A DNA stretch of 64,000 nt from Trichosphaerium sp. ATCC 40318 (taxonomy: Eukaryota > Protista > Tubulinea): positions 186,001 through 250,000 of the forward strand of contig JALMLS010000309.1 in assembly GCA_038496445.1 (NCBI GenBank), written 5' to 3'. The notes under the pieces are model-generated. The model had not been told where the DNA came from and searched no databases. It was given only the letters and a program-made list of their open reading frames with translations. Below are positions 24,887 to 27,916 of this stretch, one piece after another; within the stretch, counting starts at the first letter, position 1, and the number at the start of each line of letters is the position of its first letter. A program made the position numbers and the translations under genes.

Positions 24887-25787
24887 TTGGTTGATGTTTG
24901 TTGTTTTAAGATTGACTTTGATGTTTGTAAGATGAGGTGTTGTAACTTAGATGATGTTCTAGTTTGTATGTATTTTCCAATCACGTGAGTTATTTTATAA
25001 CGTGACAGATAATTCATGAGAATTGGGATATTCTTTGAATATCAGGTAAATTCTTTTTCCCGTGTCTCTTAAAATGTACAAGATACCGGTCTTTTTATTA
25101 TAAAACCCGGCTACTGTTAGAATACGGCCTATGAGGCTTTATCATAAGCACTAGCTGCCCATAGCTATTTATCATCCCATTATTTGCACCGGCAAAACTC
25201 GGGATTATAGTATCTATAGATAAATTTGCGATTCATCAAGCGTTAGGGAGGACTAGCAAGCTATGTTCTTACTTCACTAGTATCACCTGGTTTACCAGTA
25301 CAAAGGCTTGTGTGAAAAAAGCCAGTCAGGCGTAAGTTGTAAGTCTTTATAGACACAACGTTTGACAACTATTGCGATAACTTTACCAAACACCTCTGTA
25401 TGGTGCTTACGATAGCATATTAACGCTTGCTCCAGGACTTTCACGTGTTCTAGTGTAAAAGGTATATCGAACCAACTATTGATATTTGAGAAGTTAGAAA
25501 ACTACATTGTGGTCATGATTACAGTTTTTGCTTATTCAAGCTTAAGTTGTACATTTGCAATACTTTTTCGACTGGTAAAAACTCCTTTGAATTATACAGT
25601 AATTACAAGCAAGACTGAATATGATAATCACAAGGTGAACAACAGTTCTATGTAATACAGATACACGGCTAAGATATTAGCGGTATAATCTAATGTATTT
25701 AAGGACACTTTACAGTAACCGGATTCGGTATTACATCAAGAACCTGAGGGAAATGCTGCTTTTCCAATGTTAAAACAGCAAGTATGC

Positions 25788-26889
25788 TTACACGGGAGGT
25801 GGGGTTGATGCATACAGCAGTGTCCAATCAGCTGCCTTTCTCTTAAACTGTTCTCTGTTCGATATCAGAAGCTGGTGTGCTTCTATGTTAAGAATTGCTT
25901 CTATAGAGCAATGTGTTAGGCACAGAACAATTTGAGGGAGATGAACTTTTATCAAAAAAGGTACCACTGTCAAGATTGACCATTTCTGCGAGAATAAAGT
26001 CAATTACGTCTGAAACTTTAACTGTAGGAGACCAAAAACAATGAATTAATTTAAATGATAAGTAACCTCGTTTACTCACCTACAATAGAAGGTTTGAACA
26101 CAAACATAAAAGTTGTGATCTGTTGGGTTTTTTTTGTGGATAATAAAATCAACATACCATAGGATGGTAAGTCTTTGTTTTCATTGTACACACTGGAGGT
26201 TTAAAAGGATACCCTTTCTATATTTTGTTAGTACAAAACTTTTGTTTGATGCTAATACTGAGCTATAATTTATAGCTGAAGTACAACTTGTTCAAAAAAG
26301 GTAAAAAAAGTTGCTTTTGGGTTGAATGATAAAGCAAGTAATCACTGGGTACAGTAGAAGAGTTTACACTGCTGTAAGGTGTTGAAGACCATTAAAAGAT
26401 TACAACACATTCATTATCACGTGTTAAGAGACGTACTGGGAACTTAAATTCGACAACAAAGTAGCCTCCAACATAAGGTGATTCTTTCTTGTTTCAAAGT
26501 AAGTTAAAAAAAAACCGGCTTATCACGTGGTTGCATAAGTACCGGTCCTTGAAATGTTATTTCCCATTTTCTGGTGCTAGATATTAAGTTGATATGGAGT
26601 ATGGCGTCGTGTTGTTTCTCTAATAGTAGGTACTCTTTTCTGAGGCGTCTAGCGCCTTTTGGTCTTGCCTTTACGCAGTTTAAGTGATATTCGCAACGTT
26701 TTGAGACATGTGTAAAATAGTTTTGTTACCTTTTCGAATGAAAACGAGTTTGTTACCAATACTTTTGTCTTGACACTTACCAGACGCAGTATTAGTTGTG
26801 TTGGAAAATCGCAAGTCTCTATTACTGCGAGCATCATTTCAGGTATTAAAAAAGCATCACTGGTATCAATAGGCTCTGAAGATCCCATG
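25788..26889 (-). CDS. F-box-like + E2 (UBC) fold fusion, catalytically inactive (UEV-like)
   Basis: Spliced: FLIPEMMLAVIETCDFPTQLILRLVS...FEK|ARPKGARRLRKEY...WEITFQGP|KESPYVGGYFVVEFKFP|KGYPFKPPVCTMKTKTYHPM|VSKRGYLSFKLIHCFWSPT...FKRKAADWTLLYA. Confidence 0.8.
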
Positions 26890-27064
26890 GTAAGTAGTAT
26901 TGCTTGGTACTGGTAATTCAAAGATATTCCCGACCTTTTGGGTAATGCCACTAAATTTTTAATGGATTTTTTCTGATCTCAAATTAGAAATGGCACGTGA
27001 CCAAATGATGAATGACAGTCACAAGCGTAACACAAACACTTTTTTTATTTCTTTGAGAAAATAT

Positions 27065-27916
27065 CTACTCATCATCATCCATATCAGCGATAAACTTTTT
27101 GAGCTTCTCATCGCTTGAAAGCAAGTCCTTTGATCGCGTAACCGAATCTACAAGTTTTATATTAGCTGAAATTGGTTCAAACAAGCCAAAACACATCAAA
27201 ACTGACGCGTATAACATTACCTTGGGTGATTTGACGCATGAAAACGTCGTACTCAGACTTTGAGATTTTACCATCTCCATCAGTGTCAAATTTATCTATT
27301 AAGCATTGTAAGCGCTTTTGTGCGTTGTTTGGCGTGAATTGAGGGGTATTTTAGTTTTGTCGTTACGTGCCAACAAATTGTTGTACAATAGCGTCTGTCA
27401 CTGGCCAGAATCCCATGGCTTGAAGGAAAGCAGGTCCCTTTGAAGTTCATTAGAGTTTCATTGATTATGACGTTTGACGGAACGATTTTTGGCGCCTCTC
27501 TATGCCTTGTATACGTACCCAATCTAGCGAAAATTAGCCTAACGCTCTTTTTGTAAATGAAAGTGGGTTTCACCCGAATAACTCATAAAAAGTACCTTCA
27601 AGCGCTGATTTAATCTCGTACGGCGCTAAAAAACCATCCTTATCAATATCCGTCTCAAACTCAAAATGCTAGGTGGCGTTAGACAGTTAACCGTCAAAAC
27701 TGATCCCAAATACGTAGGAAAGGAAGTGGTACTAAGGATTAATAAAATTAGTACCTCGGTGACGTATTTAGCCCATTTGGCTTCGTCAGCCAATAAACCT
27801 TCGTATTTGTTCTAAAATAAGGCGTTAGGTATCATTTTGATACTTCTTTTTGGTTTTCGTTAACGTACAACAAAGCCGTTTAACTCTTGTTTAACTTCCT
27901 CTAGTTCCTCTGCCAT
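27065..27916 (-). CDS. Small EF-hand calcium-binding protein (spliced)
   Basis: EF loops DIDKDGFLAPYE and DTDGDGKISKSE. Confidence 0.7.

Follow-up and report, generated by a model that had tools for sequence, protein, structure and literature searches.

The gene at positions 25788 to 26888 on the minus strand of the window (the 64,000-nucleotide stretch of amoeba DNA analysed here) belongs to a family of four genes. The best explanation of our results is that the family joins a degenerate F-box-like head to a dead UBE2D-type ubiquitin-conjugating (E2) fold and acts in the manner of the Drosophila protein Morgue, with the gene in the window (copy A) being a recent duplicate; taken as a whole, we give this reading a probability of roughly 55%. 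The gene model, the loss of the catalytic residues, the in-frame splice in paralogue B and the long-term constraint on the family are established. In the proposed mechanism, a short, degenerate, helical F-box-like head, followed by the UBC fold about eight residues later, would dock on Skp1 and so bring the protein into an SCF (Skp1-cullin-RING) complex, where the dead E2 fold would serve as a non-catalytic binding module for ubiquitin, polyubiquitin or a partner that ordinarily engages an E2. The F-box identity of the head, its binding to Skp1 and the binding target of the ubiquitin E2 variant (UEV) are what we infer, and by analogy a Morgue-like mode of action is the most likely one. New here are the existence of a fourth family member (copy D), the assignment of the RNA evidence to copy B, and the recognition of the copy in the window as a young duplicate whose divergence looks neutral.

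Gene model and loss of the E2 catalytic residues

Copy A lies in contig C25 (186001-250000), within a 70-Mb, 642-contig amoeba assembly with short introns. It comprises six exons running from 26888 to 25788 on the minus strand, as do all features of the gene given below, with GT-AG borders throughout, consistent phases and a product of ~206 residues. Exon 1 (26730..26888; 53 aa), with its ATG at 26888-26886 and its donor GTAACA at 26729-26724, encodes the F-box-like head, in which residues 14-50 (LIPEMMLAVIETCDFPTQLILRLVSVKTKVLVTNSFS; 26739..26849) make up the F-box-like segment. The exon is conserved over all 53 aa (94% in copy B, and 57% in copy C over residues 11-53). A stronger-looking alternative donor at 26781 (GTAAGT), which would give a 36-aa exon and halve the head, was rejected for the family because residues 37-53 are kept in copies B and C and an RNA contig of copy B reads through to the 26730 donor. 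Intron 1 (26669..26729; 61 nt, GT..AG) links the head exon in frame to the UBC exons. These begin with exon 2 (26543..26668; 42 aa), which supplies a short linker, helix alpha1 and the first strands of the UBC fold (...RRLRKEY...WEITFQGP), and continue with exon 3 (26437..26487; 17 aa, KESPYVGGYFVVEFKFP), identical in copies A and B, and exon 4 (26158..26217; 20 aa, KGYPFKPPVCTMKTKTYHPM). Exon 5 (25965..26079; 38 aa plus 1 nt; VSKRGYLSFKLIHCFWSP, also given as GYLSFKLIHCFWSP) is separated by intron 5 (25901..25964; 64 nt, phase 1) from exon 6 (25788..25900; 36 aa plus stop), whose first 2 nt complete the codon split with exon 5 and which encodes the last two UBC helices (...REQFKRKAADWTLLYASTPPPV) up to the stop codon TAA at 25790-25788. 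Introns 2 and 3 begin with alike 26-nt stretches (window 26414-26439 and 26520-26545) that hold the palindrome CACGTG close behind the donor (GTAC.T...CACGTGATAA on the coding strand); the likeness may reflect chance, a common intronic signal or an intron duplication.

Comparison with the E2 fold was made exon by exon, using individual exons and their profiles. The exon 2 profile, built from four paralogues, aligned with residues 3-40 of an E2 (E = 0.048), and exon 3 was 56% identical to the corresponding exon of the genome's own UBE2D-like gene (C7). Exon 4 aligned with positions 56-73 of Pfam UQ_con (PF00179; E = 5.7e-4), the exon 5 profile with UBE2D2 residues 80-109 (E = 0.037), and the exon 6 profile with residues 124-149 of yeast Ubc1 (E = 2e-4). 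The matches of the UBC exons to E2 enzymes are colinear along the whole core, and a prior reading made from the DNA letters without database searches (the sequence-only reading), which had described a full UBC fold after splicing, was right in this respect. The UQ_con cut-off of 27 bits was reached by no single exon of copy A. The gene was likewise not listed in a six-frame Pfam UQ_con scan of the genome (E ≤ 0.001), which indicates that its exons are strongly diverged. Two introns, one after ...KFP and one directly after HPN/HPM, are common to copy A and the canonical UBE2D-like gene of the genome.

Both catalytic determinants of an E2 are altered in copy A, as the sequence-only reading had proposed. 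Exon 4 ends ...KTYHPM, so that HPM (26166-26158) stands for HPN, and the GxICL motif reads GYLSF in exon 5, where a Ser codon (TCA, 26058-26056) occupies the catalytic Cys column and no Cys is found in the GxICL context. In an alignment that includes the genome's own canonical UBE2D exon, this column reads C in the canonical gene, S in copies A and B, H in copy C and D in copy D. The second Asp of the DPNxDDP loop (DPNADDP in the canonical enzyme) is Ala in copy A, as placed by ungapped register from WSP. Given the Ser in the Cys column and HPM, copy A is a UEV or pseudo-E2 and not an active E2; a UBC fold without the active-site Cys is what characterises the UEV class, and this Cys is missing in all four paralogues. 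Judged from sequence comparison, the fold is a UEV/pseudo-E2 descended from the UBC4/5-UBE2D class. The canonical UBE2D-like E2 of this genome (C7:268000-270500) itself reads ICVSTL where animal UBE2D reads ICLDIL, so the Asp behind the catalytic Cys is not conserved even in the genome's active UBE2D-like enzyme.

E1 can charge Cys-to-Ser mutants of E2 enzymes, yielding a stable oxyester. The fold of copy A might thus still be catalytic, with the Ser as an oxyester acceptor or with the Cys six residues downstream (26040-26038), which is present in exon 5 as had been claimed, acting as the nucleophile. The top PDB match of the exon 5 profile, a Cys-to-Ser variant of UBE2D2 aligned Ser on Ser, would fit the first of these options. 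However, the Ser is replaced by His in copy C and by Asp in copy D, and three copies (A, B and C) have Met for the Asn of HPN. Nor is the downstream Cys conserved: it is Tyr in copy B and missing from the exon of copy C, which argues against its use as an alternative nucleophile. We therefore regard retained catalysis as highly improbable.

A four-gene family and the recent duplication of copy A

Spliced RNA was examined in one public run, over part of the stretch, as Logan contigs, which drop rare variants. The run behaves as RNA, in that a multi-exon contig matches the neighbouring EF-hand gene (27075-27915) with 100% identity. Over the gene of interest, one contig joins 26729 to 26667, skipping the 61-nt intron 1 with CT..AC ends and thereby connecting the long form of exon 1 to exon 2, and a second contig joins 25965 to 25900, skipping intron 5 exactly. 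Both contigs carry the letters of copy B at 11 of the 11 listed differences from the window, so that the in-frame splice between exons 1 and 2 is proven for copy B and not for copy A. The head-to-fold junction near 26670-26730 was therefore borne out as an exact skip in spliced RNA, in contigs that derive from the paralogue; the contrary case, in which the F-box exon would not be spliced to the UBC exons, is at odds with the RNA of copy B, which joins them. The splice sites of copy A are identical to those of copy B, and the same joining of head and UBC exons can be expected there on that ground. Contigs covered the exon 1/2 and exon 5/6 junctions, and the exon 2/3, 3/4 and 4/5 junctions lie outside them. 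The predicted junction at 26080-26157 has canonical sites and is conserved across the four paralogues; at the equivalent position, right after HPN, the canonical UBE2D gene is also interrupted by an intron.

The neighbouring gene, on the minus strand at 27075-27915 of the window, has multiple exons and encodes an EF-hand-type protein (DKFDTDGDGKISKSEY...); its 100%-identical spliced contig is at higher depth. One of its introns is apparently GC..AG (27296-27370), and the ends of the junction from 27438 to 27596 are unusual, its two sides being separated by four additional letters.

Six-frame exon searches and comparison with the E2 genes yielded four family members in this genome, each of ~200 residues. 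Copy A, in the window (C25), has HPM, Ser in the Cys column and Cys at the downstream position. Copy B (C236:24231-25327), 94.3% identical to copy A at the nucleotide level over 1.2 kb including introns, likewise has HPM and Ser, with Tyr at the downstream position. Copy C (C236, ~59.7-60.6 kb) is 43% identical to copy A at the amino acid level and combines HPM with His, in an exon without Cys. Copies B and C have six exons and phases as in copy A, and copy D (C185, ~97.3-98.4 kb) has the same exon layout. Copy D, found at ~324-1435 on the plus strand of C185:97000-99500, has a head (MEVEDPVFSNEVFHLIIEECDENTVYALRSTCTQMKAL...) only 26% identical to that of copy A at the amino acid level, which is nevertheless homologous to the heads of the other three (hhalign P = 2.6e-5). 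Its UBC fold keeps HPN, has Asp for the catalytic Cys (GSIDLDILCCQWSPAL) and Cys at the downstream position, and its exon 5 is above the Pfam UQ_con cut-off with 32.6 bits. Copy D is thus the more conservative member, standing as a link between the canonical UBE2D class and the other three copies.

A profile of the four heads retrieved just these four loci from the genome. Searched by HMMER against 1.84 billion representative proteins, the head profile found no relative and no animal protein; the sole match, a protein made of KDFATQTTLELVRLLL repeats, was judged spurious. In JGI metagenomes the head alignment gave 153 pattern matches, none of which was confirmed, and the family was absent from the public protein sets searched. 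Since these searches yielded no relatives of the head, external conservation cannot back its reading as an F-box. Within the genome, the comparison of copies A and C gave pN = 0.39 and pS = 0.71 (saturated), i.e., a dN/dS of ~0.25 or less, which indicates that the family has been under long-term constraint, although copy A itself may not be.

The relationship between copies A and B is of a different kind. The segment common to the window and C236, determined by blastn against pieces of C236, spans 25434..26944, with 94.3% identity over 25736-26944 and 82% over 25434-25650 and otherwise nothing in common. An interpretation of the two copies as alleles or haplotigs was rejected, because just ~1.5 kb is common to them and their flanks are unrelated; they are dispersed paralogues. 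No terminal inverted or direct repeats were found at the segment edges, and duplication by a mobile element was set aside for lack of such repeats. Copy A is accordingly a young duplicate of an expressed paralogue, which arose by recent DNA-level copying of ~1.5 kb from (or with) copy B. Exons of the two copies differ at 28 of 618 positions (4.5%) and introns at 15 of 466 (3.2%), with 22.5 non-synonymous and 5.5 synonymous differences; the resulting dN/dS of ~1.2 is consistent with neutrality (Fisher P = 1.0 against it). So far, copy A has diverged as if unconstrained.

These results would fit a copy A that is redundant or already dead, a young and still unbroken pseudogene within a family that may be functional. 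In favour of this, the exons are no better conserved than the introns, every RNA contig over the locus proved to be copy B, the duplication took in only ~56 nt of sequence upstream of the ATG, and a simulation with 28 random neutral substitutions kept the frame open in 25% of runs. On the other hand, copy A has suffered no damage to its reading frame, its start codon or any of its ten splice sites, and the absence of its letters from all RNA contigs of the run does not amount to silence, given that Logan contigs drop rare variants and that copy B itself was at a depth of 3-7. The genes are moreover tightly packed, with the neighbour ending ~190 nt upstream, so that a short promoter may suffice, and the excess of amino acid changes in exons 2 and 5 could be adaptive. 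We consider a dead or redundant copy A quite conceivable, while leaning towards the other side. The locus is an extra copy, and its own use has so far left no sign.

The changes between copies A and B were patchy. Exons 3 and 4 had none, and exons 2 and 5 together had 17 non-synonymous and 2 synonymous changes, a non-synonymous rate ~3 times that of the introns (P = 0.004, the exons having been chosen post hoc). Amoebae are hosts of effector-secreting bacteria, and this clustering could point to an SCF-borne E2 decoy under diversifying selection, which would present ligases that seize host E2s with the likeness of an E2 surface. In this amoeba, which feeds on bacteria, bacterial effector E3s would then be delivered to Skp1-cullin, ubiquitinated and destroyed or, in a variant, the RING of the amoeba's own SCF would be blocked, and copies A and B would be a young pair caught diverging on the surface that faces E3 and ubiquitin. 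The sequence-only reading had suggested a trap for pathogen E3 ligases that hijack E2s, or an inhibitor of SCF, and our results contradict neither idea. The changed positions lie around the former active-site loop, loop 7 (Thr/Ala at the position of UBE2D Ala96) and helix alpha2, and all four copies retain YPFKPP and WSP, motifs of the E3-binding loops. However, the retention of these motifs does not decide the binding partner, since they are also critical to the fold, and the comparison of non-synonymous with synonymous changes within exons 2 and 5 was not significant (P = 0.38). The adjoining introns 1 and 5 were also the most diverged between the two copies (6.8% and 7.8%), so that regional heterogeneity, e.g., patchy gene conversion, explains the pattern equally well as positive selection. 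Polarising the differences by copy C was uninformative, as 18 of 20 sites matched neither copy. Overall, a decoy under diversifying selection appears improbable.

The head as a candidate F-box

The sequence-only reading had placed an F-box-like motif ahead of the UBC fold. A motif is indeed present at residues 14-50 of exon 1, and its identity as an F-box received weak support, with a Pfam score below the cut-off. Pfam F-box profiles (PF00646 / PF12937) scored the head at 13.2 bits against a cut-off of 20.5 (E = 0.087), aligning its residues 16-48 with profile positions 6-38; the cut-off was not reached in copies A, B or C, and copy D gave no match at all. When head profiles were compared by hhalign with 20 F-boxes of the same genome, P improved from 0.015 with three heads to 2.8e-4 with four, i.e., with copy D included, at a probability of 41% and with residues 14-52 placed on template positions 7-45. 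The register, judged by LPxE, hydrophobic heptads and V-S/C-K...L, was unchanged between the two runs and put LIPE on LPxE. In the ESM Atlas, the ten best named clusters were all F-box, with a score of 0.89, below the 0.9 mark, and so provide a lead at most.

ESMFold2 was used to model docking of the head on Skp1, of which exons 2 and 3 were supplied as separate chains; the ipSAE was 0.40, compared to 0.15 for the best control. The runs had at least 86% of their contacts in common, and the pLDDT of the partner was at least 61. Among solved complexes, 51 of 78 reached the docking mark, as did 2 of 108 mismatches, and at values of 0.60 or less stood just 5 of the 78 solved complexes together with all 4 of the mismatches that passed. 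A value of 0.40 therefore amounts to weak support, as passes in this range are wrong more often than not.

Several results would instead fit a head that is merely a helical extension specific to this family, on a free-standing UEV which, like Mms2/Uev1, has no link to SCF and would pair with or block an active E2, or bind ubiquitin. The Pfam scores are consistent with this, as are the searches of the PDB with the head profile, which returned no F-box protein, the hits being limited to designed repeat proteins and a His-tag artefact. The usual F-box Trp is missing in all four copies, and copy D has lost the Leu-Pro as well. AF2 folded the isolated head (pLDDT 77.6) into a short helix and one long helix, and Foldseek found no match to this model in the PDB at E ≤ 0.001. 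Set against these points, and against the weak docking pass, are the four independent weak tests that point to an F-box in the same register, the 50-fold improvement of the profile-profile P upon addition of the fourth paralogue, and the existence of Trp-less F-box subfamilies in this very genome. A purely family-specific extension is, on this evidence, rather unlikely.

The F-box-like head with possible Skp1 docking remains our preferred reading. Four weak lines of evidence (Pfam, hhalign, Atlas and docking) agree on an F-box identity, and descent of the head from an F-box seems probable; as to its being a working Skp1 binder, we take the chances to be about even. A first look at the genome gave at least 1398 F-box candidates, among them a large, highly similar Trp-less subfamily (LPPETLTHILTYLDKKQRIRASIVSHLFNNIIRYNIGF) with many copies on several contigs. 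There are also several Skp1 loci (C137, C57, C88, C430 and C51), among which are two pairs of near-identical loci (C88/C430) and some weaker matches that are divergent.

Comparison with Morgue and other E2 variants

Among catalytic E2 enzymes, the family is closest to the UBE2D/UBC4-5 class, with which it has in common the best exon-level matches, two intron sites and the YPFKPP and WSP motifs. It differs from that class in that the catalytic Cys, the Asn of HPN and the loop Asp are replaced in copy A and an F-box-like exon has been added. Stand-alone UEVs bind non-covalently by means of a UBC fold without the catalytic Cys (PMC3787007). The amoeba fold resembles those of Mms2/Uev1 and of the TSG101 UEV domain in having no catalytic Cys; unlike the amoeba genes, those proteins have no F-box, and exon matches indicate that the amoeba family is UBE2D-derived and does not belong to those UEV families. 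Searches with the exon 2, 5 and 6 profiles gave no match to Mms2/Uev1 or to the TSG101 UEV.

The architecture itself is not new, being already known from Morgue. Drosophila Morgue consists of a zinc finger, an F box and a UEV, and binds SkpA via its F box as well as K48 polyubiquitin (PMC3787007). Its N-terminal zinc finger is of the CX2CX12CX2C (C4) type, its F box has five conserved Trp, and its UEV has an invariant Gly at the Cys position; Morgue has been reported from protostome invertebrates only, and its precise biochemical role is still unclear (PMC3787007). Like Morgue, the amoeba proteins would carry in one polypeptide an F-box or F-box-like segment N-terminal to an E2 variant without the catalytic Cys, and this order is reflected in the in-frame splice from exon 1 to exon 2 in copy B RNA and in the identical splice sites of copy A. 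In contrast to Morgue, exon 1 of the amoeba gene has a single Cys and no zinc finger motif, the head has no Trp, the four copies have Ser, Ser, His and Asp where Morgue has Gly, and the proteins are much shorter, at ~200 aa.

Lacking the zinc finger, the five-Trp F box and the Gly, the amoeba family is proposed to work like Morgue and not to be a member of the Morgue family; as compared with the published description of Morgue, its layout is likely of independent origin. If the head is a working F-box, the Morgue layout, with a dead E2 built into an SCF ligase, would have arisen a second time, apparently independently, in a lineage remote from animals. A minimal, zinc-finger-free version of 200 residues would then offer a simple system for the role of a pseudo-E2 inside SCF, the usefulness of which is increased by the natural variants of the 'active site' in the four copies (Ser, His and Asp) and by the young, diverging gene pair.
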